A stretch of 64,000 bases of DNA from Tubulanus polymorphus (lineage: Eukaryota > Animalia > Nemertea): positions 22,342,210-22,406,209 of the forward strand of contig NC_134030.1 in assembly GCF_964204645.1 (NCBI RefSeq). The letters run 5' to 3'. The notes beneath the pieces were generated by a model that was given only the letters and a program-made list of their open reading frames with translations, was not told the DNA's origin and made no database searches. How positions within the stretch are numbered: position 1 is the first letter of the stretch; every line of letters starts with the position of its first letter. Both the position numbers and the translations under genes were made by a program. Below, one piece after another: positions 2,310-44,188 of this stretch.

Positions 2310-3261
2310 TGATTACATCTGGTTTGTAGATTTTACTTTCTTTCGTTCCTGCTGAATTAGTGGCTACACATTTATACTGTTTACCAGCCTCGGGTACAAT
2401 TTTCCACACTGGTTTAGTTGAGGTAAGATGTAATGCAGTCCAGGTCCCTCCTGCTCCACTGTTCACTTGTAGCTGGAAGTGTAGACCAGTCGCTGCAGTA
2501 TTACTTTGTTTACAGGTAATACTAACAGTTTTACCTTCCTGCGACAGTAATACACCTGTACCCGGTAATACATTCACACTGTCCAGTACAACTCCATCAG
2601 GTGCTGAAATATCAAATACACAATATACGTAATATTCTTGTACCCGGTAATACATTCACACTGTTCAGTACAACTCCATCAGGTGCTGAAATATTAAATA
2701 CACAATATACGTAATATTCTTGTACCCGGTAATACATTCACACTGTTCAGTACAACTCCATCAGGTGCTGAAATATCAAATACACAATATACGTAATATT
2801 CTTGTACCCGGTAATACATTCACGCTGTCCAGTACAACTCCATCAGGTGCTGAAATATCAAATACACAATATACGTAATATTCTTGTACCCGGTAATACA
2901 TTCACACTGTTCAGTACAACTCCATCAGGTGCTGAAATATCAAATACACAATATACGTAATATTCTTGTACCCGGTAATACATTCACACTGTCCAGTACA
3001 ACTCCATCAGGTGCTGAAATATCAAATACACAATACACTTAATATTCTTGTACCCGGTAATACATTCACACTGACCAGTAAACCTCCATCAGGTGCTGAA
3101 ATATTAATACCAGTCTATAAAACCGGACGTTGCAGTTTAGAAGTAGTTCATCATTTTAACTCACCAGTATTTCTCTTATTTCGTACCGATACAGCTTCTG
3201 AATTGAACGAGATTGTCAGCAGTAGAATTACATCGATTACCAACCAGATCCAGTTCTTCAT
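2310..3261 (-). CDS. Gene C (partial): leader exon and first Ig exon of a gene A paralog; the rest probably lies beyond the window start
   Basis: Exon 3165-3261 encodes MKNWIWLVIDVILLLTISFNSEAVSVRNKRNT (signal peptide plus RNKR), donor G|gtgagt, phase 1. Exon 2310-2603 encodes an Ig domain (SITC...YKCVATNSAG) about 78% identical to gene A D1, with a 7-aa deletion. I found no further exon in 1-2300. Confidence 0.75.
2557..3110. repeat. 82-bp tandem repeat spanning the intron/exon boundary of gene C Ig exon (7 acceptor copies)
   Basis: Unit gtacccggtaatacattcacactgtccagtacaactccatcaggtgctgaaatatcaaatacacaatatacgtaatattctt. Acceptor AG positions run from 2604 to 3096 in steps of 82. Confidence 0.95.
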
Positions 3262-3352
3262 CTTTAGATCATGCGTCACCTTTAGACTAGAGTAAATGAA
3301 CAACCCAGAATTGGTATATGAAAATACTTTATTCCTATCTTAAGTTCAACAA

Positions 3353-4298
3353 CCAGGAAGAAAGACACTCTAAATATTTGGATAGATATATGAAAGCTGT
3401 GGATACTGGAGTGTGTAATGGGTAGTGTAGTGTGATCTGTGTGCATTTGTGGCCAGCACACAGATCACATTGTCTATTGGTGTTCGGTCCAGGACTCGCG
3501 AGATTTTCAACAACACGGAAGTAACGGGTAATAAATGATGACTTGAATTGCATGACTACCTACCACCCCTCATTATTGTTGGAAAACTAAACGTTCGGCA
3601 CTGACTAAAAATTAGTAATAACATTTTAGAAATGGCCAGAATTTTAACTTAGGTTCTATCTCATTTTTATTTTACAATTGCGATTGGTATAATTTTTTTT
3701 TAAACGGCCGTTAAGGCTTCATGTTTCGTCTGCAATTCACTGCAAATAGTTACGCAACTACGCACATTTCAGTGTTTTGGCAGCTGTACACTCAATCGGC
3801 ACCGTTCGTGACTAGCTTCACTGCGGAATTATCATTAATTAACATCGCCATATCACATCATCAACTTATATTGTGCCTTAAAACCCTAACAGCCGAAATA
3901 ATTGAAATGCACACACGATTTCTATCATTGAAAATTGAGAGAATGGCCGTGTTTTTGTTCTGCTGCTTCGCGTAAATCCCGCGCGGCCGCGCGGAGTGGG
4001 GCCGATACGTCCAGTTTTTATCGGTTGTTTTCCTTTTACGTAATCTATTCCATAAATACATTTTATCTTACATGTTATATCATTCTTTCTTGTAGAGTAG
4101 TTTCTATTATCCGCCAATCAATATTAGTCACCTTAATATAACAAACCTCATTTAGGATGATGCGATCTTGGAGTAATCATTTGTCAAATGATTACTCCAA
4201 GACGCGATACAGCTTCTGCATTAAACTTGATTGTCAGCAGTAGAATTACCAACCAGATCCAGATCTTCAACACATTAACGTGTTACGACCTTGAAATA
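3353..4298. repeat. About 950-bp segmental duplication, copy 1 (copy 2 at 20413-21359)
   Basis: Near-identical direct copies. The ORF track shows identical peptides at 3861-4141 and 20922-21202. Confidence 0.95.
4202..4270 (-). pseudogene. Decayed copy of the gene C leader exon (second copy at about 21263-21331)
   Basis: Reads (L)KIWIWLVILLLTIKFNAEAVS versus MKNWIWLVIDVILLLTISFNSEAVS. ATG is changed to TTG and the 3-prime part is replaced by a 35-bp palindrome. Confidence 0.75.
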
Positions 4299-4766: not shown

Positions 4767-4824
4767 ACAATCAAAAATAAATAGACTTTAGTAGTCGACT
4801 AAAAGTCTATTTATTTTTGATTGT
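4767..4824. repeat. About 57-bp AT-rich hairpin
   Basis: acaatcaaaaataaatagacttt ... aaagtctatttatttttgattgt. Confidence 0.8.
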
Positions 4825-4883
4825 CCACGATCTTTTTGGGATATTTCGCTTAATTTTGGGTGTGCATACCTCAAATAGGTCTT

Positions 4884-9338: not shown

Positions 9339-9389
9339 GGCTTATGACTAATTATTTTACAAACACGACTAACAAATATATTTCTACAC

Positions 9390-12723: not shown

Positions 12724-12739
12724 CCATCGAACATCCTCA

Positions 12740-15700
12740 TCAAACAGCACTCCCCTCCTGGCCACTACCATTACCTGCATTAATCCTACTAGACTCGGGG
12801 TTCACTCTTTCGCCCCGCAAATGGTTCATTTCCCCTCCACGACAACCTACAAATAAAAACAAATCATAAAATACAATTGTCCGATTGTGATATAATTGTG
12901 TTTGGATAACTGTCTGCTCTGCTTTGAATATTGCTCTGCTTTTTTTAATAATCTTGCTGTTGTATTATATGAGTACCCTTACAGTTTTCTCTGCTTTAAA
13001 TGACGTGTCAAGTGCGTGTCACGTGTCAAACTGTTTTATGTTGTTTGTATTACATCTGATTACTTAATTTGTCTCTTTGTTCTGGGTCGTAAATACCTCA
13101 CAATTTTTTCATAACACTAGTATTCTTGAAGTTTAGGATAAACTCCAAACGATGAATAAACTATTAGCTCGAGGAATACAATTTTTCTAAAGATGACTAT
13201 TAGGATATAGTTGAAACGTTGAATAAACTACACTAGCTCAAGGAATACAGTATTCCTGAAGATGACTATTAGGATATAGTCGAAACGTTGAATAAACTAC
13301 ACTAGCTCAAGGGATACAGTATTCCTGAAGATGGCTATCAGGATAAAGTCGAAACGTTGAATAAACTACACTAGCTCAAGGAATACAGTATTCCTGTAGA
13401 TGACTATTAGGATATAGTCAAAACGTTGAATAAACTACACTAGCTCAAGGAATACAGTATTCCTGAAGATGACTATTAGGATAAAGTCGACACGTTGAAT
13501 AAACTACACTAGCTCAAGGAATACAGTATTCCTGAAGATGACTATTAGGATATAGTCGAAACGTTGGATAAACTACACTAGCTCAAGGAATACAGTATTC
13601 CTGAAGATGACTATTAGGATATAGTCGACACGTTGAATAAACTACACTAGCTCAGGGAATACAGTATTCCTGAAGATGACTATTAGGATATAGTCGAAAC
13701 GTTGAATAAACTACACTAGCTCAAGGAATACAGTATTCCTGAAGATGACTATTAGGATATAGTCGAAACGTTATTGCCACCATAGACTACCGCCCCCTAG
13801 CTCTTTGGAGACAGGGAACCAGTCTTCAATTCAATTCAGAATTTATTTTACAGAAAAGCGGTTTTTAAGTTTTAGATATTCAAACTGAAAAATATAAATG
13901 TTCATACAGAGATTTTACAAATGGCCGCTAACGCAAGCACCCAATGAAAGTAAAAGAAAATAAAAAGAATTTTTTAAAAACGTGAAAGTAAATATTTTTT
14001 GTGAAATTTTATTTGTGTCAATAAAGAATGAATTGAATTGTCAGCAGCACTATGCCGCGCATGAATACCAATTTCAAGAATGATCACGCACGCTCAACCA
14101 AGGTTGGTATGCGCTGCTAAAATAACAAAAACGATTTAAAAAAATCATAAAACAATGAAAACGACAACCGTAATAGCCAATATACGAAAGCAACCTAGAT
14201 TTTATTACTGCATTAAATGTGTGTAAATATCAGAGCCCAAGAACGTTTCTAACGAAAGTTATAGACTCCCCAAGCAACTTATCAATCCGTGTGATAGCAA
14301 TATGGGCTTGCAAGCATGCAAGCCCATGATAAAATGCGCGCCATTTTGTTTTGGGTTTCACATTAGGCTTTCCCATTGGGCTTTCCCAATGACATCAGAA
14401 ACGCCGAAATTCCCGGAATGTCCTGTATATCCCACAAACAGCCAATCACATTCATTGTAGCTCAGGTTACAAGGTCAACTCAAATAAATAGAAGCGAGGA
14501 AATTTAGGGGGTTTATAAAGTGAGGGCCTGTAGGTCGAAAAGTACATTGAGATCAGTCGAACTAAAAACGGCAACACTTCCAGGAAGGATTGAACTTTTA
14601 TATATTTCAATTCCACGCATGCAAATTGCCATATGTAAAAACGTGCCATTACTTAGTGCTAAAAAGCAGGGTTTCACGTGTTTTTCAAGAATAAGTCCCC
14701 TGAAAATATCTCGATCATGAAATTTTTGTGGCCTCGAGAACTCATTAAGCCAAACCATGACACCAAAAATCAACACTATTGGTTCAACAGCCAGTGTTTA
14801 TGCCTTGTTGACACACCGGTACTCTATTCATTTTCAATGAAAACTGCTTCATCAGACCGTTTGCATATGCTACGGTTCGCCAAAAATGTACAAACGTTTA
14901 TTAATACTCAACCCAACGTTGAATTCAATTTCAAGCACTCTTTCACCATTATCGAGGGTTGACTGTACATGTTTATAGAGGGAGAGTAGATAATTTTGGA
15001 TGGATCCTCTAATCTCTCCAGCCTTTTCATTTTAAGCATTATGTAAATGAATTATTACAGAACTTATAATTTCCACATCTACACGGTTCATCATTAGGTC
15101 AATTGTAAATAACGTAGATTCTGCAGTTGTTTATTACAAGTTTGGCGACAAAAACAGTTAATTTGGCAGGATTAATCATCAATGTTTTCAATGTTAATAC
15201 AACTTACAGCAATTACATGTACACGGCCCACTTCTCAACAGCACTGCAAATAGAAAATAATACAACAGTTTATTCTACAGTTACTGTGAATATTAATCTT
15301 TGTCAATTTCAAAGAAGGTTATTTTATAAAACAGTGACACACTTCGTTATCAGGTTCATCGGCAGCAGGTAATTTGCAAGTCACTAAAAACAAACAAACA
15401 AATTATTCTAATTTGCGATAATCCTTTCTATGATTCTACGATGGTATTTTCCTATGACACTTACAGCAACAACAAACACATAGTTCATTGTCCGACGAGT
15501 TTTCTTGATCATTAGGTTTTCTGCACCGCACTGTCAATTAGAAATAACACAGTATGTTATTTCTGCAGTTTATTAGGGTTTTCAGAAATTAACGATGGTT
15601 TTATGTAAAACTTACAGCAGCCACGACGCCACATTATAAACAGTATTATCGGAATCAGTAATATCAGTATACCGATTACAGCACCAGCCACTATTCCTCC

Positions 15701-18700
15701 ATTCCATCCATCTGGAACTGAAATTCAAACTAATCAGCAATTTTTATTAAATCATATATAAAACCTAGAAATAGTTCCATTGTAACAATTGATTAACATT
15801 GAGTAAGTCCACACCAAAGAAAACCCTGTTTCTCGGGCCTGACCGCCACAGTATTTCGCCAAGTCATCTAGTCATCCAGCCATCCAGTCACCCAATACGG
15901 CCTGAAGTATCTTAGTCAGTAACTTAGTCATCCAGTCACCCAGTCACCCAGTCATCCAGTCCCCCTGTCACCAGGTGCCCAAGTCACCAAGTCCCCCAGT
16001 CATCCAGTCCCCCAGTCACCAAGTCCCCCAGTCACCCAGTCACCCAGTCATCCAGTCACCCAGTCACTCAGTCCCCCAGTCACTCAGTCCCCCAGTCATC
16101 CAGTCCCCCTGACACTCACTCACCCAGTCCCCCAGTCATCCAGTCCCCCTGTCATTCACTCACCCAGTCCCCCAGTCATCCAGTCCCCAGTCACCAAGTC
16201 CCCCAGTCACCAAGTCATCCAGTCCCCCTGTCACCCAGTCACCAAGTCATCCAGTCCCCCAGTCATCCAGTCCCCCTGTCACAAAGTCCCCCAGTCATCC
16301 AGTCACCCAGTCCCCCAGTCACCCAGTCCCCCAGTCACTCAGTCCCCCAGTCATCCAGTCCCCCTGTCACTCACTCATCCAGTCACCCAGTCCCCCTGTC
16401 ACTCACTCACCCAGTCCCCCAGTCACCCAGTCACTCAGTCCCCCAGTCACCCAGTCCCCCAGTCACCCAGTCCCCCAGTCACTCAGTCCCCCAGTCACCC
16501 AGTCACTCAGTCCCCCAGTCACCCAGTCCCCCAGTCACCCAGTCACCCAGTCCCCCAGTCACTCAGTCCCCCAGTCACCCAGTCACCCAGTCACTCAGTC
16601 CCCCAGTCACCCAGTCACTCAGTCCTCCAGTCACCCAGTCCCCCAGTCACCCAGTCACCCAGTCCCCCAGTCACTCAGTCCCCCAGTCACCCAGTCACCC
16701 AGTCACTCAGTCCCCCAGTCACCCAGTCCCCCAGTCACCCAGTCACCCATTCCCCCAGTCACCCAGTCCCCCAGTCACCCAGTCACTCAGTCCCCCAGTC
16801 ACCCAGTCCCCCAGTCACTCAGTCCCCCAGTCCCCCAGTCACTCAGTCCCCCAGTCACCCAGTCACTCAGTCCCCCAGTCACCCAGTCACTCAGTCCCCC
16901 AGTCACCCAGTCCCCCAGTCACTCAGTCCCCCAGTCACCCAGGCCCCCAGTCACTCAGTCCCCCAGTCACCCAGTCACTCAGTCCCCCAGTCCCCCAGTC
17001 ACCCAGTCACCCAGTCCCCCAGTCACTCAGTCCCCCAGTCACCCAGTCCCCCAGTCACCCAGTCACTCAGTCCCCCAGTCACCCAGTCCCCCAGTCACCC
17101 AGTCACCCAGTCACTCAGTCCCCCAGTCACCCAGTCCCCCAGTCACCCAGTCCCCCAGTCACTCAGTCCCCCAGTCACCCAGTCACTCAGTCCCCCAGTC
17201 ACCCAGTCCCCCAGTCACTCAGTCCCCCAGTCACCCAGTCACTCAGTCCCCCAGTCACCCAGTCACTCAGTCCCCCAGTCACCCAGTCCCCCAGTCACTC
17301 AGTCCCCCAGTCACCCAGTCACCCAGTCCCCCAGTCACCCAGTCCCCCAGTCACTCAGTCCCCCAGTCACCCAGTCCCCCAGTCACTCAGTCCCCCAGTC
17401 ACTCAGTCCCCCAGTCACCCAGTCCCCCAGTCACTCAGTCCCCCAGTCACTCAGTCCCCCAGTCACCCAGTCCCCCAGTCACTCAGTCCCCCAGTCACTC
17501 AGTCCCCCAGTCACCCAGTCCCCCAGTCACCCAGTCCCCCAGTCACCCAGTCCCCCAGTCACTCAGTCCCCCAGTCACCCAGTCCCCCAGTCACTCAGTC
17601 CCCCAGTCACTCAGTCCCCCAGTCACCCAGTCCCCCAGTCACCCAGTCCCCCAGTCACTCAGTCCCCCAGTCACCCAGTCCCCCAGTCACCCAGTCCCCC
17701 AGTCACTCAGTCCCCCAGTCACCCAGTCCCCCAGTCACCCAGTCCCCCAGTCACCCAGTCCCCCAGTCACTCAGTCCCCCAGTCACCCAGTCCCCCAGTC
17801 ACTCAGTCCCCCAGTCACTCAGTCCCCCAGTCACCCAGTCCCCCAGTCACCCAGTCCCCCAGTCACTCAGTCCCCCAGTCACCCAGTCCCCCAGTCAATG
17901 AAGTTACAAATTTCAAAATAAGAAAATACAACATACAAGACACATGCGTAATTCACACAGAATAACATAAACATGTAATTTTAAATGACAATGTCTACTT
18001 CAACCCAGACTCAAGAGGATATCGAGTGACAGCCAAACCGAGCAGGAACCCCGGGCCGGCTGACTAGGCCATACAAACGATATGCTCCAAAGTAATTATG
18101 ACGCAGACATCAAAAGAGCTCTTTCTTCAACTATGGAGGCAATGAAGTTGCAGACCAGCTTAGAATGAAGTCGTGAGTGAAGTCGGTCGCAAGTTATCAA
18201 TTATTGACAATTTTCAATAAAGAAATTACATGAAACCACTACTAGAGTCGAAGACCTGTATCATCTACCCAATCGCCAAATCTCATAATTCCCCAAATAT
18301 CTTAAAACTTTGATTTCAAATTTGCAATTCCACATTAGCTTATCCCAAAAATTCTACATTTTTTCGCAGGCGCCAAATAATTTATTAAAATTGATTTTCT
18401 TGTTGGAAACAAAGTTGGAAACATGAGTAACAAAGCAAAGCTTATTTTGCGGGCAAATTTCCGCTAGAAGTGTGGCAGGATTTAGCAACTAGATTATTAT
18501 TGAAACATGTCAAAGAAAGCCAGGTGTCATATATTGATAAACTAATGATGTATTCATAATTCAGTAATAGTTATAGAAAAATACTGTTGCTAAAGTAGTT
18601 ATCTTCATTACCTTGAGCAGGATCCACTGTATCATTAGCAGCAGGATTTTCGGGGAAAGAAGTGACTGAAAACAAACAAAATAGATTGATATGGTATTTT

Positions 18701-24700: not shown

Positions 24701-27700
24701 CTTAAAAGAAATAGCTTTTCTAATAGAAATATATTTCCTAATAATTCAAATTTATTTTCAAAATGCTTATCACGTGACCATTTGAGCCGTTGCAGTTGCT
24801 AGTAATCGCAACCGACATAAGCAGGGAAGCAACTAGGAGGATCTCATATCCCGCTAGTCGGCCTCAGTTGCTGCGAATCGGAGCGCAGTCGACATAAGCT
24901 GGGCTGCGATCGCGGTTGCTCTCAGTTGCGTCGGTAGGCGTCGCGTTGCCTGTCGACATAAGCCAGCCTTTAGGATGATTTCTCAAATACAACAAATAAA
25001 TCTGTTTAAATCTTTATTGTAAGAAATATTTCTCGAATTCGAAAAAGAAACTGTTACTTACAATGAACAATGATTGGATTAAATTGCTGAGGTTCTGGAA
25101 ACGTAAGGTTCTCCTTTACAGCACATCGAAATGACGTTCCATTGTGACGTGTGAAATCAGCTTTGAACTTGTACGTCGTGTCAAAACCCCCCAAGACAGA
25201 TACTCTTTGAGGTTGTGGATCAGGAATTGGCTGCCATTGTTCTGAACCTCTTCTCTTCTGTTGGTATATCACTGTAGGATCGGGCCTTCCACCTTCTGTT
25301 CTACAAGTATATTCTACATTTTCTCCTTCAGTTCTAATGTCAGGTTGTCCGGTGAGATTACCTTGTGTTTGAATTTTATCAGGAAAATCTGAAAGATAAA
25401 AATGTAAATATATTTTTTGGCTACCATTCATTATATGATTATTTCATTTCTTTACGCTTATCAATTTATTATTGTTGCTACTGTGAGAAAATATTCATCC
25501 ATTAAATATAGAAATGTCACTTGAGGTGGCGGGTGTGGTACTTCCCAGAGGTTCAATTAATGTTTAAAAATGCTTAGAAAAACAACAGTTCCTTTTTTAG
25601 ATATCATACTATAGTTTTGTATCATTTGTAACATTTGTAACCAATGAAGAGGGGTATATGTTAACCCGAAAACGTTTAATGACTTATTCAACATGATTCA
25701 TTTATATGAAAAATAAAACTGTTTGTTCTTCTATGGATATTTTAATTATTTGAACACTCTACCGAGCATATATCACTAATGTTTATATATCAGGGATCGT
25801 ATGGGTAATCTAAATCAATAACTTTTAACCGAAAAAGTTTATATTTTTATTTACATTTTGACATTTTAGTTCCAATCCATGTGGACTCAAAATGTATAAA
25901 ACCTTCATATTACAAGGCGTCCCATGTACAAAACTTTTAAGTATAATAAGGTTGAATTTCCAAAAGTAAATACCCGCACTAATACTCATTTCTAGGACAG
26001 TCCCGGACACCCAGCAAAAGTGTTAACTCATACCAGACTTCAGTCTGACATGATATGAAAATAATTTCACTGTTTTTTAACTTACACGTAACATCCATTT
26101 CCATTTGATGTAGTATTTCATTGTGTAGTTTTTTACCACTGTAGTGCGTCAAGTGACATTGAGTCGATGTTGCATGCATTACGTATCTGTGATCGGTCTG
26201 AAGCCTGCTGATAACTCCACCATCGTTCAGCGAAGTATTTACGCCATAATCAATAGGGGAGAAATCTTTTTCGCCTTCAGTATATCCATCAGCATACCAT
26301 TTTACAGTTATGTTTATATTACCGATCTTACTAGTGGCTTTACAAGTACAAGCTAGTGATGGTTTGAATTCATGCAGTTTACACGGATTTTCATTTATCT
26401 TTATACCTATAACAGATTTACATGAAAACATTTACAATTTCAATTTGCTAGAGTCCGTGAAACTGGCAAACACAAACGATTAGATCGGTTTCGGACGATC
26501 TGTTTGTTTTTCAAAAGGACTCTTAAGCTAGGGGTGACAATAGAGTGGTGTACACAGTTGAAATTGATCGATATTTTATAAAAATTCGGATGTTGCAAAT
26601 AGTAATTCAAACATGGCCGACGGTGCAATTTGCAATCCATAGAGCTCTGCAATGCAAAATTTATTGTCGACTAAAACTGCGCTGAAGTAATTTCTGTACC
26701 AGTCACGAGATGAATCTTTCAGAATGATGTTTGGCTAAATGTTTAGCAGATCGTTTTGGATGTAGATACTGAAATTCGATGTTATAAACCTCATATATAC
26801 TCATAGCTTTAAGGATGTGGATATCTTAATATGGATAGAAACTGCTTTAAGTTTCTGTGAACCGTGTGTATGAATAGAGTAGATAAACATAAATCTGGAA
26901 TTCAACTGAAATAAGCTGGTCTCGAACGATTGAACCGGTTATATTGGGGTGATAAATTAGTTGTTTAGATAACGGAAAAGGAAGCCAGAGTTAACAAGCA
27001 AGCTACGTGAATGCTTACGTCACACATTACATATAGAAACGAAGATAGATGAAAGTGACGTTAGGATCTAAGTGGGGAAGCTTGATATAGCAGCAGCCTT
27101 GAGCTCTGGTAAGTTCAAGTATTAAATTTAGCACTAGTGACATACGAAGAAACGTTTTACATAGCTCGGTGGAATGTTGTGACGTGATACTACGTCACAG
27201 GCTATAGCCGCGATCACGCGGAGACGATTTGGCCCGGGCCAACTTGGCACGGATTAGGCTCGGCCAAATTTGGCCCGTTTCTAATTAATGAGCACGCTCA
27301 CACGCAAACCATTCATTCTATACTAAACAATGCTCAAACAAAGCGAAGTGGATCATTTTCGGTGCTAGTTGCAATTCAAACGCAATCATTTGTCTGGCGC
27401 TAAAATTTGGCTTGGGCCTGGACCGACATTTTGGTCGGGCCAAAAATGCTCATGCGATGGCAGCTAATGATGCCGGGCTGTGTAGACGTATACGTCACGA
27501 GAAAGATAATGCAGTAAACTTGGGGTCCAGGGAAACCATGCCCACTAGGGAAGTGGTTCCAAAAGCTCAACATTCTAACAATTTCAATATTCAACGCCCC
27601 CTGGTGACCATATACAGAATCCAATGACCTTGAAACTCACCACAATCATAGAACATGTCACGAACTATAACTTTGTAATTGATCATGGTAACAAAATATG

Positions 27701-30700
27701 CCTAGGAACCAATATAATAAGGAAATATTAAGTTATTCTACTATTCAACGCCCCCTGGTGGCCATATACAAAATCCAATGACCTTGAAACTCACCACAAT
27801 CATAGAACACGTTATGAGCTACAACTTTCTAATTGATTGTGGTAAGAAAATATGCTTAGGTATCAATATAATGTGGAAAAGTTTTTTCCCACTTATGAAT
27901 GAGTACTGCTGACACCAAGATGGCCGCCAATTGCGTCATAATTGGCTGATGAGAAATACCTATCTCAGTTATAAAACGTCCCTTTCCAAAGAATACCCAT
28001 CACAAATTGCAATGAGAAATGGTAAACCATTAGGAAGCTACAGGACTCAGAATTCGGGCCAAAATCAACATTTTTGGGCACTAAAAGGATGGCCATCTTG
28101 ATTCCGATCGACCCAATTTTTGTTACGCTGATGGACGCCGGGGGGATTCACATATATCCGAAAGATCAAGGTAATTGATCAAAGCGTCTTCAAAATTTCC
28201 CTCTAAAAGTTCAAAAATGTGTAAAAAGTGCTGATTTTGGCGAACAACAATGGCTGCCAGTCGGCCATCTTGATTCTGACAGGGCCAGTTTTTGGGCTGA
28301 AGATGTGTCTAGGGTAGATACATGTGTAACCCAAATATCAAGACATTACCTTGAAGCGTCTTCAAAACTTCCCAAAATATCTGGATTCCGTCTACGGACG
28401 GACGACGGACGAAAAGTGAACGCAATAGCCCACTGGGACTTAAGTCCCTAGTGGGCTAAAAAGGGAGGGTTTCAGTACAGTAGGGTGGTTGAGCTAGAGA
28501 GTTAAAGGGTTGAAGATTATGAAAGAACTTGAATGAACATTTTAAGAAGGTATTGGAATAAATGCTGGAACCATAGAACGCACGTCCGATACAACGACCA
28601 GGTGACAATAATCATCAATGTTTGGCTTTCGAAATAAACATTCAACTGACATGGCTTTAACTTCTATGAGCGATGATATTTCACAAAATCTAGAAGCACA
28701 GACGTTTAGAAAGAACCGCCCATACTTACTGATTACATCTGATTGGTAGATTTGACTTTCACTCGGTCCGGCTGAATTGATGGCTACACATTTATACTGT
28801 TTACCAGCCTCAGGTACAATTATCCACAATGTTGATATACACTCTGGTTCCTGTTTAGATGAGGGAAGAGATAATGGAGTCCAGGTCCCTCCTGTTCCAC
28901 TGTTCACGTGCAGCTGGAATTCTACACCAGTCGCTGCATTGTTGCTCTGTTTACAGGTAATATTAACAGTTTTACCTTCTTGCGATAGTAATACACGTGT
29001 ACCCGGTAGTACATTGTCACTGTCAAGTACAACTCCATCAGGTGCTGAAATATCAAATACACAATATACGTAATATTCTTGTACCCGGTAATACATTCAC
29101 ACTGTCCAGCACAACTACATCAGGTGCTGAAATATCAAATACACAATATACGTAATATTCTTGTACCCGGTAATACATTCACACTGTCCAGCACAACTCC
29201 ATCAGGTGCTGAAATATCAAATACACAATATACGTAATATTCTTGTACCCGGTAATACATTCACACTGTCCAGTACAACTCCATCAGGTGCTGAAATATC
29301 AAATACACAATATACGTAATATTCTTGTACCCGGTAATACATTGACACTGTCCAGTACAACTCCATCAGGCGCTGAAATATCAAATACACAATATACGTA
29401 ATATTCTTGTACCCGGTAATACATTCACACTGTCCAGTACAACTCCATCAGGCGCTGAAATATCAAATACACAATATACGTAATATTCTTGTACCCGGTA
29501 ATACATTCACACTGTCCAGTACAACTCCATCAGGTGCTGAAATATCAAATACACAATATACGTAATATTCTTGTACCCGGTAATACATTCACACTGTCCA
29601 GTACAACTCCATCAGGTGCTGAAATATCAAATACACAATATACGTAATATTCTTGTACCCGGTAATACATTCACGCTGTCCAGTACAACTCCATCAGGTG
29701 CTGAAATATCAAATACACAATATACGTAATAATCTTGTACCCGGTAATACATTCACACTGTCCAGTACAACTCCATCAGGTGCTGAAAAAGATACGTCAC
29801 TTTTAGGAAGGCGCCTCGAAATCTTCAAAATTTTAAAGATTTTTTTGGATTGAAATCATCATTTTTGTCTGGTAAAGGATGACCTTATTTTCATTTCGTA
29901 CGTATGGCACTGCTGATTCGCAAGAAAAACCAGTGACTTTTGTCGATGACAACACAACTTGCGATATGTCTGTGTCTTGGAATCAGTATAAAGGATTGAA
30001 CTACTAACAACGTATTCTCAGCTCATAGTGGGACACTGGATGCTGGTTTAAAGTTTTGCGATGAAATTATACCCAGTTCCGACGACTTAGCAGACTTTAT
30101 GGAGAATATCGATTAAAAATGTGGCTGGTGAAAGGATCAACAAGGATAGTTGTTTTGCTTTATAGAAGAATTAGTTAAATCATGGATAAAATTAGTATAA
30201 CGGTTTATAGAATGATTTTAGGATTGATGATTAATCACAATGTAGTTCCGAATTGAAAGTATTTGTACCGTAATTTGTGATGAATTCAAACTTTTGGAAA
30301 TATATTTAATTTAAGTAATCTGGTCCCACTCCGCACGGATGCGCCACCGAGCGGGATTTACGCAAAGCAGCAGAAACAAATATGGCCACCTTTTGAAATT
30401 TCAATGTTAGAAATTGTACAAGAATTTCGATTATTTCAGCTGTTAGGGTTTCAAGGCACAATATAACTAGATGATGTGATATGGCGATGTTAATTAATGA
30501 TAATTCCGCAATGAAGCTAGTCACGAACGGTGCCGATTAAGTGTACAGCGATCAAAAACATGAATTTGCGTAGTTACGTAACTATTTGCCGTAAAGTACA
30601 GACGAAACATGAAGCCTTAATGGCCGTTTACAAAAACATTCTTGCAATCACAATTGAAATATAATAATGATATACAACTTAAGATAAAATTATGGCCTTT

Positions 30701-31639
30701 CTAAAATTATAGCAAAAATATATTATAATTTGTAGTCAGTGCGGAACGTTTGGTTTCGGAACAATAAATGAGGGGTAGACACAATCGACACGTGTGTACT
30801 ACACTCGCTGTATCGACGTTCGCGGCTCTCAACCTAAACAAAACCGGCACCCGACCGGAACCCGCCAACCTGGCCACCTTTTCTACGATTTTACATCTAT
30901 ATGATTAAATCAATTTCCGACAACGTTTTCGCATTTTTTATTCGTGTATCTAGTGTTTCAACGTGTTTATCAGTATACCGGGGGACCCGTGGTTAGGATG
31001 GATCTTTGAATATATATCCCGGCTGTGAGATAAGATTCTTAAATTGATGAAAGTAAACATTCAATGTGAGTTGATATTTGGATAGCATTTTACGCATGTC
31101 TGAAGATATAATAATACAATAATTGAATATTCAAAATGAGTCACTTTTTAGGTGAAATTTTAGTTACATCATTCCAACTGTTATCAGTTGAACCACTATC
31201 ATTTTGTCCCAGATATTTGTGTTACAAGTCTGGTGATAAGTTTTATCGTATGTAATAATACATTTTTGATAAATAGACCCTCATACTAACATAGTACCCA
31301 AGTTTCACCATGATCGACCCACGGCTGAAAAAACCAGACACTCACACAGACAGACTGATAGGTTTCACATAGACAATTTGATGTTATATGTTTATTATAA
31401 TATATTTCTGATCATTTTGTCCCAGATTTGTAAAACAAGTTTCCAAGTGTGATGAATGATACTAATGATAGTAATAAAGTCTGAAATATTTATGCAATAT
31501 TATTTTTCGTGGGTTTTTTCACTGGTGTCGTTGTCTTACGGGTATTGACTCTAAACGCTTGTGGATTGTTGTGCGGGATTAGAATCAACAGTATGATCAT
31601 CACTAAACACTGCTGCAGATTCCTCGACTGATTCCTCAT
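12740..31639 (-). CDS. Gene A: four-Ig-like-domain type-I membrane protein with Cys-rich juxtamembrane tail and C-terminal PDZ-binding-type motif (about 565 aa)
   Basis: Exons: 31540-31639 (leader MRNQSRNLQQCLVMIILLILIPHNNPQAFRVNT), 28730-29044 (D1), 26086-26406 (D2, C...KW...C), 25062-25388 (D3), 23848-24117 (D4), 18612-18665 (stalk), 15616-15717 (TM GGIVAGAVIGILILLIPIILFIMWRR), 15465-15530, optional 15333-15383, 15208-15243, 12740-12846 (ends EGSAV-stop). All junctions are phase 1 with GT-AG. The leader and terminal exon assignments are less certain than D1 to TM. Confidence 0.75.
13113..13772 (+). ncRNA. Tandem array (about 10 x 69 bp) of minimal type-I hammerhead ribozyme motifs
   Basis: Each unit contains TATTC-CTGAAGA-T-GACTAT-taggat-ATAGTC-GAAA-CG-TT-GAATA, i.e. 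stem I, CUGANGA core, stem II, GAAA, palindromic ACGT mini stem III, UH site. Cores are intact in units starting near 13251, 13320, 13527 and 13665 (13734 has the core but lacks the 3-prime stem I strand). Other units carry core mutations. Confidence 0.8.
15860..17897. repeat. 9-bp minisatellite (CCAGTCACC / CCAGTCCCC / TCAGTCCCC variants), about 2 kb, in a gene A intron
   Basis: Direct inspection. Confidence 0.97.
18792..19722. repeat. Same 9-bp family organised into 57-bp higher-order units
   Basis: 19-aa periodicity (QSPSHQVAQSPNTPCHSVP) in the spurious ORF 18756-19841. Confidence 0.93.
19728..19980 (+). mobile_element. LINE ORF2 relic (segment C-terminal to the RT domain)
   Basis: LSFCKYILGVNKFTSNAAVIGELG matches the post-RT motif FCK.ILGV...T.N..V.GELG of non-LTR retrotransposons. 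Disrupted downstream. Confidence 0.65.
20413..21359. repeat. About 950-bp segmental duplication, copy 2, embedded in the intronic minisatellite of gene A
   Basis: Matches 3353-4298 with only scattered substitutions. Confidence 0.95.
21388..23609. repeat. Same 9-bp family with 32-bp derived units and longer higher-order blocks
   Basis: Unit acccagccaccaatcccccagtcacccaatac interleaved with cagtccccc runs. Confidence 0.95.
24305..24969. mobile_element. PIF/Harbinger-type MITE
   Basis: TIR aggctggcttatgtcgaca(a/g)gcaacgc at both ends; TTA target-site duplication on both sides. Confidence 0.88.
27520..28462 (+). mobile_element. Helentron/HINE-like non-autonomous rolling-circle element
   Basis: 5-prime subterminal gcccactaggga is complementary to part of the 3-prime hairpin tagcccactgggacttaagtccctagtgggcta, which is followed by an A-tract. 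Internal about 155-bp direct repeats (27588, 27743) and a ggacggac microsatellite precede the hairpin. The 5-prime boundary is approximate. Confidence 0.6.
28999..29790. repeat. 82-bp tandem repeat spanning the intron/exon boundary of gene A D1 exon (10 acceptor copies)
   Basis: Same unit as 2557-3110. Acceptor positions run from 29045 to 29783 in steps of 82. Confidence 0.95.
30322..30777 (-). repeat. Diverged inverted copy of an about 440-bp dispersed element also at about 3565-4003 and 20625-21064
   Basis: Reverse-complement matches, e.g. gatgtgatatggcgatgttaattaatgataattccgca and gaagctagtcacgaacggtgccgat. Confidence 0.8.
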
Positions 31640-32093: not shown

Positions 32094-32399
32094 CTACGGG
32101 ACGTTCATGCCTCGGGGCGTGTTCGTGTCGAGTCGTCGTATCCAGTCTTGTTCGGCTGCTTCGCGGATCGGTCTCGTGGAGCCTGGTAGGTGTTGGAGAC
32201 CGTACACCCGAAAGTGTTCGCGGGTGTGGTCGACTTGGTTGAAGTGGTCCGAGACTGGAGTCGAATTCTTCGTTCTGATGCGTGAGACGTGATGAGTGAC
32301 GCGTTCTCGTAGAGACATTCCGGTTTGGCCGACGTACAGCATGTTGCACTTGGTGCATTCGATGCAGTATACAATTTCACGGGTCGCGCAATTAAGGTC
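32094..32399 (-). mobile_element. GIY-YIG endonuclease domain of Penelope-like type (fragment, no RT)
   Basis: DLNCATREIVYCIECTKCNMLYVGQTGMSLRERVTHH...PVSDHF...AEQDWIRRLDTNTPRGMN: the VY-x-I-x-C-xx-C...YVGQT, R..H and E..WI..L....P.G.N pattern of PLE endonucleases. Locally GC-rich. Confidence 0.85.
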
Positions 32400-35374: not shown

Positions 35375-35547
35375 CAATGACGATATAGAACAATGACAGA
35401 TATGTTTCAACCGGAATAAGGCCTCTTAGTGTTAGTTCCTGGTTTATAGAACCCTATAGAAGACTTATTCTGTTTTATCCATTTTTTTACAATTTCAAAT
35501 TCTATTTCAAGATCATTTTCTATTTTTAATAGAAAATTGTCTATCCT

Positions 35548-37538: not shown

Positions 37539-37770
37539 CGGCCGTTGCATTGTAGCGTAATTGGTCCAGCAAAGGGCACAATTAATTTCATCGCGTCGTA
37601 TGTCCTCTGATTCCATCTCATAGTGATCTCCCATTCCAATTAAAGGGGAACTGCAGTTAAACAATTTCAATATATTTTGAAAGTATTTTCTCTTGTGAGT
37701 ACCTTCTCGAACTAAGCACTATTAGACGAAACGATTCCGAGGCGAGGAATGAGTTATATTCGCACTCTTA

Positions 37771-38949: not shown

Positions 38950-41900
38950 TTATGTATGAGTGGTGTCTTTCTTCGAACTTGCCGCCTTCCCGGCTTCCAT
39001 ATCGATGCCACGAGTTGTATCTTTGCCCTTTCCGGCTTCCATATCCATATAAGGAGTTGTATCCTTGCCCTTTCCGGCTTTCATATCCATATAAGGAGTT
39101 GTATCTTTTCCCTTTCCAGCTTCCATATCCATATAAGGAGTTGTATCCTTGCCCTTTCCGGCTTCCATGTCCATAAAAGGAGTTGTATCTTTTCCCTTTC
39201 CGGCTTTCATATCCATATAAGGAGTTGTATCTTTTCCCTTTCCAGCTTCCATATCCATATAAGGAGTTGTATCCTTGCCCTTTCCGGCTTCCATATCTAT
39301 ATAAGGAGTTGTATTCTTGCCCTTTCCGGCTTCCATATCCATATAAGGAGTTGTATCCTTGCCCTTTCCGGCTTCCATATCTATATAAGGAGTTGTATCC
39401 TTGTATATTCCGGCTTTCATATCCATATAAGGAGTTGTATCTTTGCCCTTTCCGGCTTCCATATCCGTGTGAGTTTTATCTTTGCCTATAATCGCGCTTT
39501 CCGTGCTCATGTACGTATCCTCGTCTATACCGGGTCCCATATCCATATAAGGAGCTTTACATTCAACAGTAGCATACGAATAAAGTTGATCATCATCTTC
39601 TACATATGCATCGGTATCTGCCACCAACTGAAGATACGTCCTCTTCAAAGCTTCAGGATTCATGTACTGATCTGTATCTGAGTCTCCCACAGCGCCAGTA
39701 GTTGTCACGTCTATCGCGCCTTCAGTACTCCTGTACGTGTCCTCTTCTATTCCAGGTCCCATATCCATATAAGGAGTTGTATCGTTGCCTATTGCACCTT
39801 CAGTACTTCTATATGTTTCTTCGTCTATATCAATGTAAGAAGCCATATATTTGCTCCTCCCGGCTTCCATATCTATGTAAGGAGTTGTATCTTTGCCCTT
39901 TTCGGCTCTCATGGCTTTATGAGTTTGTATGTTATGTTGTAGTAATCCAGTTTCAGTATTTCTCACAGGTTTTCGGTTTAGAACATTGTCGGGATTTCTG
40001 CAATCATCCGGATCTTCGTAGATGTACAATTCTTCATTTCTTGATTCAAGCTGTAGAGGTCGAGTTGAAGTCTCCACATGACCTTCATCGGGCGAACGAC
40101 GTCTGCATCTGAAAGTTGTAATGCAGCATAGGAATTTTTGTCAAAGATGCAATCTATCGTCTATGGTGGTTGATTCGGGCCATGCTAAAAACATTTTCTG
40201 TAGAAACGTAGAAAAATTTTCACATCGGCCCGTTTTTTGGTTTTCTCGCGCGAAAATTCAAAACATTTGGTTTTCTCGCGCGAGAATTCAAAACATTTGG
40301 TTTCAGTTCACAGTTCGAACTGTTTTACGGTCGACTTCATACCTGCGAATGATGACAATGATGCGAATGATGCCAACAGTGATGAGAACGATCAAAATGA
40401 ATCCAGTCGCTCCGCAGGAGAAGTAGAGAATGGTCCGATCAGTTATGGTCTGGTCAGTTGTGGTCTGGTCAGTCGTGGATCGGTCTTTAGTGGTCCGCTG
40501 ATTGGGGTCTTTTGTAGTCTGAAAGTTGTAAGAATAATGAAAAGGCTATCATGAAACACCGTTAAATTAGATTTTTTAGTGACCGTTTATTCGAAAAGAA
40601 ACTGACATTTGCCATCAAAAATAATCAATCTATTATCATATCGATTATGAACCCATCTCCACAGTTGTGTTGGTTAAATTTGACTCTAAATCCAGTTCTA
40701 CAGCTGTGGTAGTTTAATTTGACTGTGGATCCAGTTCCACAGTTGTGTGGGCTTAATTTGACTAAGGCTTGAAAGGCAGCAGATACTCACCTTCGGTAGA
40801 TCAGTAGTTGAATGACCTGAAACAAAAAATGACTAACCGAGTGAGAAAAATCATCTCATGCATAAAGCCTGGTTCCCGAGTGTAGTGGGAAAGCGTTCGT
40901 GAAAACGCTGAAAAATTGGACCCGATCTGCTGGAAAAGGCAACTCGCACGATCATGAAAATGTTATCCGCAGTAGTTTCCAGCCTTGCCACAAAGCGCTC
41001 GTGAAAACGGAGTCCATTTTCAGCTATTGCTGAGATAGAAAAACTTTATCGTTGAAAATGGTTTTAATTACTTTTTTTTCATTTCTCTAGTACTTTCTGT
41101 TAACCTTTTGTATTCCTCGTGGTAATTATTATTTAGGGCTTTCTGACCACCGTCAGGAAAATGAAAGAAAACGATGGTAAACCAAATCCGGTCATCAAGA
41201 AATCATCAAGAATCCGTCCACTGCTGGCCATTTGATGAGCTAGCCAGCGCGTTCGCAAATTCTACTAAACGAACCTCTGTACAATGCGCGAAACCATCAC
41301 CAACAACTTCTAAGAATGAACCGGAAGCGAGAAATTGGAGTCTTATCAGAATCCGGTTTGAAACACGACTATAGGTTCTTGATGAATTCCAGATCATGCC
41401 GACTAAATCTGAATCTCTGCCGCTATTGGTCATCAGTGAATTCGTCGAAATTATGTCTAAAATGTCTTTCGTTTTGAAAATTTGGAAAAATACGTCGTCC
41501 GCCATTTTGTTGATTTAAAATGAGATAAACAACTTTGGACCGTTTAACTATAACGGTCGTTTAAGCGATTTAACCGACCGTTACATCTTTGAGCAACCGC
41601 AAATAACGACAGTTTAATTTTTTGACGCCTTATAAAACGTTACCATTATGAAACCTAAACATTGTTAACCATTCAGCGTCATTTCACAATCGACAACCGT
41701 TAATCGAAACGTCACAGGTCTATGTGTACACATACAAGCTATTTGGCAAAATATTATTGACAAAGATGTAGAATGGCTCCCTGTGATTATACAATGACCT
41801 CTATTTGAACGTCGAAATGTTATATTGCATTGAATATCATTAGAAGACGTATTGTAATAGTAAAGGATGAAGTAAATTGGATTATTCGGTTAAATGACCG

Positions 41901-44188
41901 ATGTATACACGGTGCGGAAGTCTGATATAAAAGTAAGAACCTAAATGGAGATGCTGGTGGAATGACGAAGCTATCTACGATCTGTGTAGGGCCGGCGTGA
42001 ATTTCATCGGCGGCTACAAGTGGTCAATATAAAAACGTGTAAATATTTAATTTCAATATTCAAATGTTTAAGAAAATATGTTCGATATTCGGGGTATCCA
42101 GGTTTCATGAGATTAGCAATTTATAATAGCATAGCTGCCATATACGGCTCCGCGTCCTCTGATGGCATGTGTTATTAGGTGACAATTCAATTCTTTATTG
42201 ATCCTTATTACATATAAAATTCCAAAATTCATTAAAGTTACAAATTTTAAAATAAGAAAATACAACATACGAAACGCATGCGTAATTCATACAGAATAAC
42301 ATAAACAAGTTTTTTTTTAAATGACATTGTCTACTTGAACCCAAGTAATAGGGATAATAGGGGTTCAAGCCAAAGGTCGAACGGTCGAACGGTCGAAAAA
42401 TGAAAAAATAAATTCTCGCACACTCGAATTTATTTTTCATTTTTTACTCACTCACCCCTTCAACCTTTAACCTGAACCCCTATCATCCCTATTACTCTTA
42501 AAATATTCATATATATGTATAACATATAAATGAATAATTTCTAAAATCAATTTTAATAAAAAATTTGATATTAAAATGGAAGCAAATAAGTACTACTGTC
42601 CAACATGTAAAATCAATATAGATATATCCCAAAAAGCAAGACACAATAAAACTAGAACACATTTAGATAGACATAGTTGTGAATATTTATATTTATATGT
42701 GTTAAATTCTTATTTTCAATATAAAAAGTAACGAGTAATTAACGAGTGAAATAATTCATATTTAAAACAGTGAATATTTATATTTATATGCGTTAAATTC
42801 TTATTTTATGTTTAAAAGTAACGAGTAATTAACGAGTTGATGAAAATATCAATTTTAATAACAAAATTACTTATAAATATGAATGAACAGATACTACATT
42901 TCAAAGATATCGATTTAAATGAATTAGAAAAATATTTTACAATTAAAAATTTCATTCCTATTAAAGATTTGATTAAAACTGCGCGTCTTCGTTTTCAAGT
43001 GAAAAATATTACTGAATTAGTGTTTAAAAATCATTATCTAATAATAGAGTTATCGAATGATAAAGATAAAATCTTATTCAATACAATAATTCCAAAATTC
43101 ACAACATTTGATGGAATAGATAAACATTTAATAATTACAGATGAAATGCAATCACTTTTTAATGATGAAAGTACATTATTAAATCATAAAACATTATTTT
43201 TACACTTACGTTATTGCCCATTCAGAGAATGCTATGTTATGTTTTTCAGATTACAAGAAAAGAGATTCATCCCCGACATTCCAAATGAAAAATCATTTAA
43301 AGACATTAGTATTCAATGTGATTTAGATAATGAAAAATCATATAAAGATGTTGGGATTCAATGTAACTTAGACAATAAAATTGATAAAACACCAGATATT
43401 AGACATTTTATCAGCGCACTTTCAACAACTGATCGTCCACACTTCACATGTGTTCAGTTCGTCATCTAAGACAGTTTTTATTGAAAATGAACTTAACAAA
43501 CACCAGACATTAGATATTTATCAGCATACTATCAAAAACTGATCTTCCATGCCTCACAAGTGTTCACTTGAGACATTTTTATTTGAAAATGAACTACAAA
43601 CACCAGACACCTGATGATAAACACACGATTAATTATAATTTTTCTCGCTTTTTAGGAAGAAATAAACTATTACTTACCGGTATTATGAAATACAATCATA
43701 TCAAACTGAATCGGTTTCGGATTTTTAGGGTTATCCTTTGCAAGACATCTAAATGATGATCCATCGTGAAGTTTGAAATCAGCTTTGAATTTTAGCTCAG
43801 CTTCAGCGAGTCTATTCGCGTTCCTTCTTTGTATATGACCACGAACCGGACCCCATGATTCAGAACCTCGACTCTTCTGTTGAAATATCAACGTACGCTT
43901 TGACCCTTCAAACGGTAGTATGCATTTATAAACTATCTCGTCTCCTTGGGTTTTCCTGTCAGGCCGACCTGCTGGGACTGGGTAAGGTCTAATCAGGAAA
44001 TCGCCTGAAACGAATGGATGTCAAGTGTCACGATTGCAAGCGCAAACAATATGAAAAAAATTCATTCTTGATGATTTCAGTAACTTACCCCCATCTCTCC
44101 TCATTCGAGACAATTCTGTACTGTGTATGTTTCCCAGTTGTAGTAAAACTACGACGCACATTAGTACGAAACAGTTCTTCAACATCAT
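38950..44188 (-). CDS. Gene B: single-Ig type-I transmembrane receptor with a tandem YxxM cytoplasmic tail (595 aa)
   Basis: Exons: 44089-44188 (MMLKNCFVLMCVVVLLQLGNIHSTELSRMRRDG, signal peptide plus RMRR), 43678-44004 (Ig: EIVYKC...FKADFKLHDGSSFRC), 40791-40816, 40343-40518 (Thr-rich stalk and TM ILYFSCGATGFILIVLITVGII), 38950-40108 (cytoplasmic tail). GT-AG introns, phases 1,1,0,2 join without stops, total 1788 nt. Confidence 0.85.
38985..39490 (-). repeat. 42-bp coding minisatellite encoding (E/K)AGKGKDTTPY(M/I)DM
   Basis: About 12 near-identical 42-bp units, in frame within the last exon of gene B. Confidence 0.95.
41206..41505 (-). mobile_element. Harbinger (HARBI1-like) transposase N-terminal relic in a gene B intron
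   Basis: ILIRLQFLASGSFLEVVGDGF resembles the L.F.A(T/S)GSF..V.GD helix-turn-helix motif of Harbinger transposases. Internally deleted. Confidence 0.6.
42345..42495. repeat. Inverted repeat / small MITE
   Basis: gtaatagggataataggggttca / tgaacccctatcatccctattac. Confidence 0.65.
42576..43469 (+). mobile_element. AT-rich intronless two-ORF insert (Maverick/Polinton- or DNA-virus-like relic) in a gene B intron
   Basis: ORF1 42576-42731 MEANKYYCPTCKINIDISQKARHNKTRTH (C2H2-type finger). ORF2 about 42879-43469 with a duplicated K(S)(F/Y)KD(I/V)(S/G)IQC motif. Both are preceded by the same aaaat(a)tcaattttaataa motif. Confidence 0.45.

Follow-up and report, generated by a model that had tools for sequence, protein, structure and literature searches.

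Introduction

Expanded clusters of immunoglobulin superfamily (IgSF) genes that differ in their signalling tails have been described mostly in vertebrates and in a few invertebrates, among them Hydractinia with its Alr genes. The vertebrate paired receptors KIR, LILR, SIRP and CD300 are encoded in tandem clusters and present similar Ig ectodomains on different tails. Another kind of tail, found in CD28 (YMNM), DAP10 (YINM), CD19, IRS-1, PDGFR and KIT, docks phosphoinositide 3-kinase (PI3K) through YxxM motifs; the YMDM form, as in IRS-1 and the kinase inserts of PDGFR and KIT, is a docking motif (pYxxM) for p85 SH2. In Hydractinia, clustered single-pass IgSF genes make up the Allorecognition Complex, with tails carrying immunoreceptor tyrosine-based activation or inhibition motifs (ITAM/ITIM) and a first extracellular domain of the V-set type (PMC9546547). 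In the sea cucumber Apostichopus japonicus, the membrane receptor AjNLRC4 joins Ig domains (residues 31-132 and 251-353) to a transmembrane (TM) segment (483-503) and a NACHT domain (600-757), binds bacteria and drives phagocytosis (PMC8699970). Here we analyse a 64,000-nucleotide stretch of the palaeonemertean Tubulanus polymorphus (C6:22342210-22406209 of the 268-Mb assembly, hereafter the window), which carries the receptor genes B and A and the beginning of a third, gene C, and we compare them with these systems.

Results

Overall organization of the locus

By sequence, genes B, A and C belong to a large family of IgSF type I membrane receptors that is seen so far only in Tubulanus polymorphus. 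These three neighbours carry three different cytoplasmic parts: an array of YxxM motifs in B, a short Cys-rich tail in A and an NLR-type NACHT module in C. An earlier, sequence-only reading of the window had proposed three same-strand genes, and all their features indeed lie on the minus strand where that reading had put them, with exact end coordinates (44188 is the start codon of gene B and 2310 the end of the first Ig exon, D1, of gene C). What it had taken for a three-gene locus is instead one corner of a family complex that is spread over several Mb and has dozens of members.

Exons were delimited from stop-to-stop frames and their flanking sequence, with canonical AG and GT sites and with the boundaries fixed by script; our own models were searched exon by exon, and work on whole proteins was confined to database proteins. 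The exon-by-exon models agree residue for residue with RefSeq proteins P0001, P0014, P0100 and P0114, each named 'uncharacterized protein', the label that every family member currently carries, and all exons of the three genes in the RefSeq models are open and bounded by canonical splice sites. Gene B (LOC141907468; P0001, 595 amino acids) encodes a single Ig domain followed by a Thr-rich stalk, the TM segment and 12 YxxM motifs in its tail. Gene A (LOC141907063; P0014, isoform X2, 534 amino acids; P0100, isoform X1, 565 amino acids) encodes four Ig-like domains (D1 to D4), a TM segment and a Cys-rich tail; the fourth of these domains, D4, corrects the sequence-only reading, which had not included it. 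Gene C (LOC141906709; P0114, 1431 amino acids) reaches into the window with its leader, an 82-bp array and D1. Before the window start lie D2, an intron with a Polinton-like element, D3, D4, the TM exon and an intact 899-codon NACHT exon, and P0114 joins all the gene C exons, those outside the window included.

All three products appear to be type I single-pass proteins, with a leader read from the sequence and one hydrophobic segment each (residues 179-212 in B, 466-497 in A and 445-480 in C, from hydrophobicity). Genes A and C share what we call the A-type layout, in which a signal peptide precedes several stacked Ig-type exons of phase 1-1, a TM helix and, next to the membrane, an RRGC/Cys-rich piece. 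Behind that piece the cytoplasmic part is interchangeable: a short Cys-rich tail in A versus a NACHT NTPase in C, where a long region extends to the C-terminus. The Ig-type exons are without exception phase 1-1, and their lengths (315, 321, 327, 270 and 294 nt) are all divisible by three. The earlier statement that all ectodomain exons are phase 1-1 therefore holds for the Ig-type exons but not for the micro-exon of gene B or for its phase 0-2 stalk and TM exon.

Three different cytoplasmic parts

The tyrosine-motif array described for gene B is confirmed by counting, which gives 25 Tyr and 12 YxxM in the tail. Each YxxM reads YMDM or YIDM, and most are supplied by a 42-bp repeat (11.5 copies, 38985-39466). 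Elsewhere in the genome, at C2:27.96 Mb, an iSH2 domain of the p85 type scores above the Pfam cut-off. The cytoplasmic motifs of gene B and a p85-type reader gene in the organism are both what would be expected of a PI3K-recruiting receptor. The 12 YMDM/YIDM motifs fit the p85 SH2 consensus pYxxM and a single YMNP fits the Grb2 consensus pYxN; the likeness to known YxxM receptors is limited to the motif, the array being made by the 42-bp tandem repeat. The hydrophobic segment of gene B contains one Arg near its inner end (VGIIRIIVII).

The tail of gene A (40-70 residues) has 0 Tyr and 9-11 Cys and, in isoform X1, ends in ...EGSAV, as the sequence-only reading had seen when it described a Cys-rich, tyrosine-free tail with a PDZ-type end; the terminal -SAV fits the class I PDZ-ligand pattern S/T-x-hydrophobic and would make a candidate ligand. 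Continuation of the gene into a NACHT or long helical tail was considered and rejected: tblastn of the tails of the paralogs P0013, P0016, P0018 and P0108 against 3.3-15.4 kb of the window came back empty, and gene A ends at 12740.

The 899-codon exon of gene C contains a NACHT domain (PF05729; 57.6 bits, cut-off 26.7) that the sequence-only reading had missed and that is also present in the paralogs P0013 and P0016. The C-terminal region looks leucine-rich by eye, and no leucine-rich repeat family was found in it in Pfam at E <=0.01.

Fold and relatives of the extracellular domains

Both D3, through Pfam (C2-set_2, PF08205, 24.3 bits against a cut-off of 21), and D1, through a family profile compared with the PDB, can be assigned by sequence to the Ig superfamily. 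The D1 profile found the Ig domains of Otk, RPTP sigma and contactin-4 (E 4.9e-5 to 5.4e-4); D1 of gene A taken singly reaches 17.6 bits with Pfam Ig_2, below the cut-off. In the PDB profile searches D4 matched nothing, and D2 and D3 gave only weak antibody-domain matches. AlphaFold2 (AF2) models of D2 and D4 have 7-8 strands. The D2 model is all-beta, with a predicted local distance difference test score (pLDDT) of 57, and its best Foldseek matches are PD-1 and antibody V domains (TM-score ~0.5, E 8e-3); the D4 model is likewise all-beta, with 7 strands and a pLDDT of 58, and its matches are Ig- or Fn3-like and weak (E >=0.07). Checking the Ig sets, as had been suggested, gave an I-set-like D1 and a C2-set D3 but only weak Ig-like fold matches for D2 and D4.

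At the level of single domains, D3 resembles the C2-set domains of the nectin, CADM and CD80 type and D1 the I-set domains of neural IgCAMs (Otk, RPTP, contactin). These likenesses stay at domain level (17-27 bits): domain order and tails match neither group, and the searches turned up no orthologue. Of the 91 hits that the D3 exon produced in an exhaustive HMMER search, about 23 were checked by name, including every hit with at least 40% identity; among these, all the close ones come from Tubulanus polymorphus and those from other organisms are hemicentin-like or NCAM-like proteins at 26-31%. Only Tubulanus proteins came back when the B tail and the whole of protein A served as queries in word searches, and the NACHT exon has its best match outside Tubulanus, at 26% identity, in a protein of Acropora. 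In line with the earlier statement that the genes show no orthology to a named family, neither the HMMER nor the word searches found a one-to-one orthologue of a conserved adhesion molecule, and a literature search found no paper describing this receptor family.

A recurring pair of genes

The paralogies noticed in the window hold. The gene B Ig exon and D3 of gene A are both 327 nt long, share QQK.RGSE.W.P and KFKADF..H.G.SFRC and are 41% identical over 97 amino acids (BLASTP, E 1e-24), and D1 of gene C is 73% identical to D1 of gene A (E 4e-52), the DNA agreeing at 91% over 831 bp that include the upstream 82-bp array. Closer relatives exist elsewhere: three B-type exons ~400 kb away are 65-73% identical to the B Ig exon, and a D3 exon in the gene C region is 88% identical to D3 of gene A.

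To size the family, as the sequence-only reading had advised, the genome was searched in six frames with the D3, D1 and B Ig exons. This gave 67 D3 matches, at least 32 full D1 exons together with >100 array fragments, and 65 B Ig matches, at least 39 of them B-type. On C6 the family occupies 18.06-18.43, 20.43-20.57 and 21.68-22.82 Mb, and it has further sites on C9 and C19. At 18 places an A-type D1 follows 5.8-15 kb downstream of a B-type Ig exon in the same orientation, which indicates that the recurring unit is a B-then-A gene pair, an arrangement overlooked in the sequence-only reading. Genes B and A of the window form one such pair, gene C, the next in line, has no B partner, and one paralog unit has the same exon order as the window pair.

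The domain shuffling that had been proposed from the three genes is borne out across the family by at least five domain orders in RefSeq paralogs, namely D1-D2-D3-D4, D1-D3-D4, D1-D2-D4, D1-D2-D1-D2-D4 and an 11-domain form with NACHT (P0013), and the tails of these paralogs are built from a few reusable modules. Some family exons contain stop codons (TGA in one D3 copy near gene C, TAG in two D1 copies).

Nearby on C6, LOC141906641 (C6:22276385-22289206, ~53-66 kb before the window) has four D1-D2 cassettes with their own 82-bp arrays behind a single leader. Its RefSeq protein of 2186 amino acids strings these cassettes in series and contains 11 Ig domains, a TM segment and NACHT.

Each 82-bp unit repeats the splice acceptor of D1 together with the initial 42 nt of the exon, and the last unit of an array is the true 5' end of D1. 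More than 100 copies, ~90% identical, stand before nearly every D1 exon of the family, even in internal cassettes that have no leader, and the unit looks like a family-wide homogenised feature.

Sequence divergence between paralogs

Identity to gene A among its paralogs falls from 88-98% in D4 and 79-88% in D3 to 64-73% in D1 and 55-63% in D2, and synonymous divergence (dS) is 0.07, 0.13, 0.25 and 0.28, respectively. For each gene A domain the nearest paralog is a different gene. The gradient and the per-domain nearest paralogs fit exon-wise gene conversion or shuffling, with D1-D2 predicted to be older and D3-D4 homogenised. D1 of gene A has a 7-residue insertion, KQEPECI, that is unique in an 11-sequence D1 alignment; it lies at 28920-28940 (residues 63-69 of the D1 exon), in the most variable stretch, and adds an extra Cys.

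Selection was tested with pairwise NG86 estimates, sliding windows and parsimony counting on 29 D1 and 28 D2 exons. The ratio of nonsynonymous to synonymous divergence (dN/dS) is 0.5-0.66 in all four domains and reaches ~1.0-1.2 in variable patches of the sliding windows only. Counting found 18-24 codons per distal domain with a silent excess, indicating purifying selection, and no codon with a significant replacement excess in either set (nominal p 0.04-0.09 at most). Describing the genes as diversifying is thus apt for their divergence, which is far greater in D1 and D2 than in D3 and D4, but not for adaptive selection, for which no site survives multiple-test correction.

Transcript and read evidence

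A 372-nt contig from run X3 covers the end of the gene B Ig exon up to its donor site, continues with 24 unaligned letters and resumes at exactly the first base of the TM exon. The 24-letter gap is explained by the 26-nt micro-exon, which is the sole AG-N26-GT candidate of its intron and sits inside a block that is 87% conserved with the intron of a paralog. This single contig is spliced, RNA-type evidence for gene B. A second X3 contig (39530-39729, in the gene B tail) shows 0 differences, and a search for contigs encoding P0001 returned none on record. Run X1 has the look of DNA at ~15x that agrees fully with the window. The contigs of sample S2 fall into two groups, exact matches to the window and contigs ~90% alike, and the latter have 2-3x depth in the DNA run and so look like paralogs, mixed with possible alleles. 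The bin 43925-44089 has zero depth in all four runs, possibly a filter effect.

Coordinates and repeated sequences

The features of the three genes are collected in Table 1.

Table 1. Features of genes B, A and C in the window (positions count from its first letter; all on the minus strand).
Feature	Position	Strand	Description
Gene B leader	44089..44188	-	ATG 44188; signal peptide MMLKNCFVLMCVVVLLQLGNIHS; 100 nt, ends in phase 1; exact match to P0001 residues 1-34
Gene B Ig exon	43678..44004	-	327 nt, phase 1-1; same domain type as D3 of gene A
Gene B micro-exon	40791..40816	-	26 nt, encodes (G)HSTTDLPK; phase 1 to 0; present in P0001
Gene B stalk and TM exon	40343..40518	-	Thr-rich stalk, TM GATGFILIVLITVGII; 176 nt, phase 0 to 2
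Gene B tail exon	38950..40108	-	Includes stop codon; 25 Tyr, 12 YxxM, one YMNP
Gene A leader	31540..31639	-	ATG 31639; 100 nt, ends in phase 1; exact match to P0100 and P0014 residues 1-33
82-bp array, gene A intron 1	28998..29788	-	9.6 copies, 97% matches
Gene A D1	28730..29044	-	315 nt, phase 1-1; I-set-like Ig domain
Gene A D2	26086..26406	-	321 nt, phase 1-1; C-W-C pattern, possibly V-like
Gene A D3	25062..25388	-	327 nt, phase 1-1; C2-set_2 type Ig domain
Gene A D4	23848..24117	-	270 nt, phase 1-1; membrane-proximal beta domain
Gene A stalk exon	18612..18665	-	54 nt, phase 1-1; VTSFPENPAANDTVDPAQ; amid G-rich repeat arrays
Gene A TM exon	15616..15717	-	102 nt, phase 1-1; GGIVAGAVIGILILLIPIILFIMW then RRGC; conserved in paralog unit
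Gene A first Cys-rich tail exon	15465..15530	-	LRCRKPNDQENSSDNELCVCCC; internal GTAAGT donor
Gene A alternative tail exon, isoform X2	15343..15381, approximate	-	TCKLPAADEPDNE; peptide mapping, P0014 residues 520-532
Gene A tail exon, isoform X1	15206..15241, approximate	-	LLRSGPCTCNCC; peptide mapping, P0100 residues 520-531
Gene A last coding exon, isoform X1	12740..12844	-	...NGSGQEGSAV then stop; coding end 12743
Gene C leader	3165..3261	-	ATG 3261; signal peptide MKNWIWLVIDVILLLTISFNSEA; 97 nt; exact match to P0114 residues 1-32
82-bp acceptor array, gene C intron 1	2557..3104	-	6.7 copies; 94-97% identity to gene A array
Gene C D1	2310..2603	-	294 nt, phase 1-1

The 8-kb intron of gene A between D4 and the TM segment is enlarged by 8- and 16-bp arrays, C-rich on the plus strand, and by a dispersed 947-bp element; the equivalent exons in the paralog unit span only 4 kb. 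In all, 8-, 16- and 32-bp arrays take up ~5 kb of this intron (15932-17897, 18792-19723 and 21387-23598), with a unit CCAGTCACCCAGTCCC on the plus strand that is G-rich on the transcribed strand of gene A, GC to 62% and a skew of -0.6, and they open long false open reading frames (ORFs) in several frames. The 947-bp element occurs as two direct copies 98.5% identical to each other, upstream of the gene C leader (3353-4298) and in the D4-TM intron of gene A (20413-21359). A duplicated leader or promoter was ruled out as its origin by a third copy, inverted, partial and 81% alike, upstream of the gene A array (30322-30776), and the element is probably a young dispersed repeat.

The last intron of gene A contains a 69-bp satellite (9.3 copies, 13133-13772) that recurs at C6:21859169-21860000 with ~87-90% identity; being downstream of the A-type gene in the paralog unit as well, it has been duplicated along with the cassette. 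The D2-D3 intron of gene C holds an element (C6:22324920-22337781) with a poxvirus A32-type ATPase and a protein-primed DNA polymerase B, the latter interrupted by a LAGLIDADG insert of intein-like kind; by these genes the element is Polinton-like, and RefSeq still splices across it. Between genes B and A, a 2-kb array (35544-37539) of 5- and 9-bp units (TCCCA / TCCATCCCA) is open in four frames for ~700 codons, and these ORFs are not genes. Just upstream of the gene A leader, a frame at 32097-32438 on the minus strand matches the GIY-YIG nuclease (PF01541, 25.9 bits against a cut-off of 22.6) and may, as a guess, be a fragment of a Penelope-like retroelement. A zinc ribbon exon of lunapark, an endoplasmic reticulum junction factor, at 50578-50859 on the minus strand (PF10058, E 3.5e-16) marks a housekeeping neighbour.

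Discussion

For the cluster as a whole, Alr appears to be the closest match, by analogy and in architecture only. Both are large clusters of IgSF genes in a single region, with Ig domains barely caught by profiles, divergent tails, isoforms and both ancient and recent duplications (PMC9546547). They differ in that Alr tails carry ITAM/ITIM, whereas the Tubulanus tails are YxxM arrays, Cys-rich stubs or NACHT; in that domain 1 is V-set in Alr but D1 is I-set-like here; in that the function of Alr is defined by polymorphism and homophilic binding, which for the Tubulanus family would be conjecture; and in their hosts, a colonial cnidarian and a solitary bilaterian worm. The Alr analogy drawn by the sequence-only reading accordingly survives as far as architecture goes (clustered IgSF genes, divergent tails) and fails at the signalling motifs, the scanned tails having no ITAM or ITIM.

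The other comparison made in that reading, with paired receptors of the CD300 or SIRP type, fares worse. Genes A and C do share their domain order, with D1 73% identical, yet carry opposite kinds of tail. However, ITIM, ITSM (the immunoreceptor tyrosine-based switch motif) and ITAM are absent from the scanned tails; the Tubulanus genes offer neither an ITIM partner nor a charged TM segment with an ITAM adaptor, the mark of a vertebrate paired receptor, and the TM segments of A and C are uncharged in their core. The recurring pair, moreover, consists of a one-Ig B gene with PI3K motifs and a four-domain A gene rather than of near-identical ectodomains.

For gene C alone, AjNLRC4 is, by analogy, the closest described architecture and the one precedent in our literature search. 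In P0114, D1 (33-131), D3 (~246-351), the TM segment (445-480) and NACHT (~599-751) follow in the order and close to the positions of the Ig, TM and NACHT parts of AjNLRC4. That protein is the product of a single gene and has two TM segments, whereas the Tubulanus proteins have one and form a tandem family, of which only gene C resembles it in the window. No echinoderm protein was among the hits of the NACHT search; AjNLRC4 is likened to gene C by its described architecture.

We hold with moderate confidence that the genes belong to a lineage-specific family of recognition receptors of the immune type. This retains from the sequence-only reading, which had inferred a lineage-specific paired-receptor or recognition locus, the lineage-restricted modular cluster of type I IgSF genes with contrasting tails, and drops the vertebrate paired-receptor marks and the three-gene locus. 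In such a family the variable outer domains D1-D2 would bind the ligand. Signals could then leave by three routes: phosphorylation of tail tyrosines followed by docking of the PI3K p85 SH2 domains in B, nucleotide-driven oligomerisation of NACHT at the membrane in proteins like gene C, and palmitoylation or PDZ tethering in short-tailed proteins like gene A. The co-duplicated B and A genes might act as a receptor and its signalling partner. The family would grow by tandem duplication of the pair and by duplication and loss of exon cassettes, with gene conversion keeping the 82-bp arrays and D3-D4 alike as D1-D2 drift apart.

More tentatively, and as a conjecture that may well prove wrong, B and A could be a working pair within a nemertean immune complex, in which one ectodomain scaffold is served by three outputs: a PI3K co-receptor, a lipid- or PDZ-tethered short form and a NACHT oligomeriser. 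A complex prediction for the B Ig domain and stalk (residues 34-150 of P0001) with D3-D4 of A (residues 246-445 of P0014) scored 0.00, with chains folded without alignments, and speaks neither for nor against the pair.

Several observations weigh against an immune recognition family, or against parts of the scheme. Regular expressions for ITIM, ITSM and ITAM matched nothing in the tails of A and B or in residues 1-68 of the cytoplasmic part of C. Neither the dN/dS of the four domains nor the codon counts on D1 and D2 bear the mark of adaptive change. The models of D2 and D4 stay at pLDDT 57-58, and no fold match reaches E 1e-3. It is gene order that links B with A, and RNA support consists of the one gene B contig and the existence of RefSeq isoforms. 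Nemertean proteomes are probably few in the databases, and 'only this species' may mean 'only poorly sampled nemerteans'. Finally, the PDB entries that come closest to D1 belong to receptors for neural adhesion and guidance, and the -SAV end of gene A would suit a junctional or synaptic protein.

These last two points would fit a different function, that of an adhesion or neuronal self-recognition barcode of the clustered protocadherin or Dscam kind, in which D1-D2 would make homophilic or heterophilic contacts and the PDZ end and PI3K motifs would link the molecules to junctions and the cytoskeleton. The solved structures nearest to the D1 profile (Otk, RPTP sigma/delta/LAR, contactin-4, NCAM) and the hemicentin-like and NCAM-like proteins that come nearest outside Tubulanus are of this sort, isoform X1 of gene A ends in -SAV, and tandem cassettes, such as the fourfold D1-D2 of P0013, recall the logic of Dscam and protocadherins. 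We nevertheless consider it unlikely. The PDB matches, at ~20-27 bits, are generic I-set similarity, the RefSeq cassettes are arranged in series and not as mutually exclusive exons, and, in contrast to adhesion molecules that are conserved, the family has no members in the other animals of the database; NACHT, on several members including gene C, is a mark of innate immunity and cell death.

An allorecognition complex in the sense of Hydractinia Alr, with polymorphic D1-D2 domains that bind their like between individuals and decide on the acceptance of grafts or tissue, strikes us as quite improbable. Graft rejection is reported for nemerteans of the genus Lineus in the older literature, and the distal domains diverge most. 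Single-pass IgSF genes clustered over several Mb, with distal domains that vary, isoforms and divergent tails, are also what is described for Alr (PMC9546547). Tubulanus, however, is solitary, with no known natural tissue fusion, its scanned tails have no ITAM/ITIM, unlike many Alr tails, the replacement excess is missing, and reads at 90% likeness mix paralogs with possible alleles.

That A, B and C are instead partly non-functional relics of a recent segmental duplication, their frames open only through youth, is very improbable: dN/dS of 0.5-0.66 is high for functional receptors, a few family exons have stop codons (one D3, two D1) and the introns are full of satellites, transposon pieces and a Polinton-like element, but a dS of 0.25-0.28 in D1-D2 was time enough for decay and none happened. 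In addition, every RefSeq exon of the three genes has an open frame and canonical splice sites, purifying selection acts on 18-24 codons in each distal domain, gene B has a spliced contig and the 899-codon NACHT exon of gene C is intact.

Almost nothing is known of immune recognition in nemerteans. Should the family described here serve immunity or self-recognition, it would offer a tractable case of a repertoire built by exon-cassette duplication and tail swapping, of an NLR driven from the cell exterior and of a signalling tail made by a minisatellite. If, beyond this, the B-A pair is part of an immune complex, extracellular sensing would be coupled directly to a STAND (signal transduction ATPases with numerous domains) NTPase in this worm, and copy number and cassettes would vary between haplotypes.

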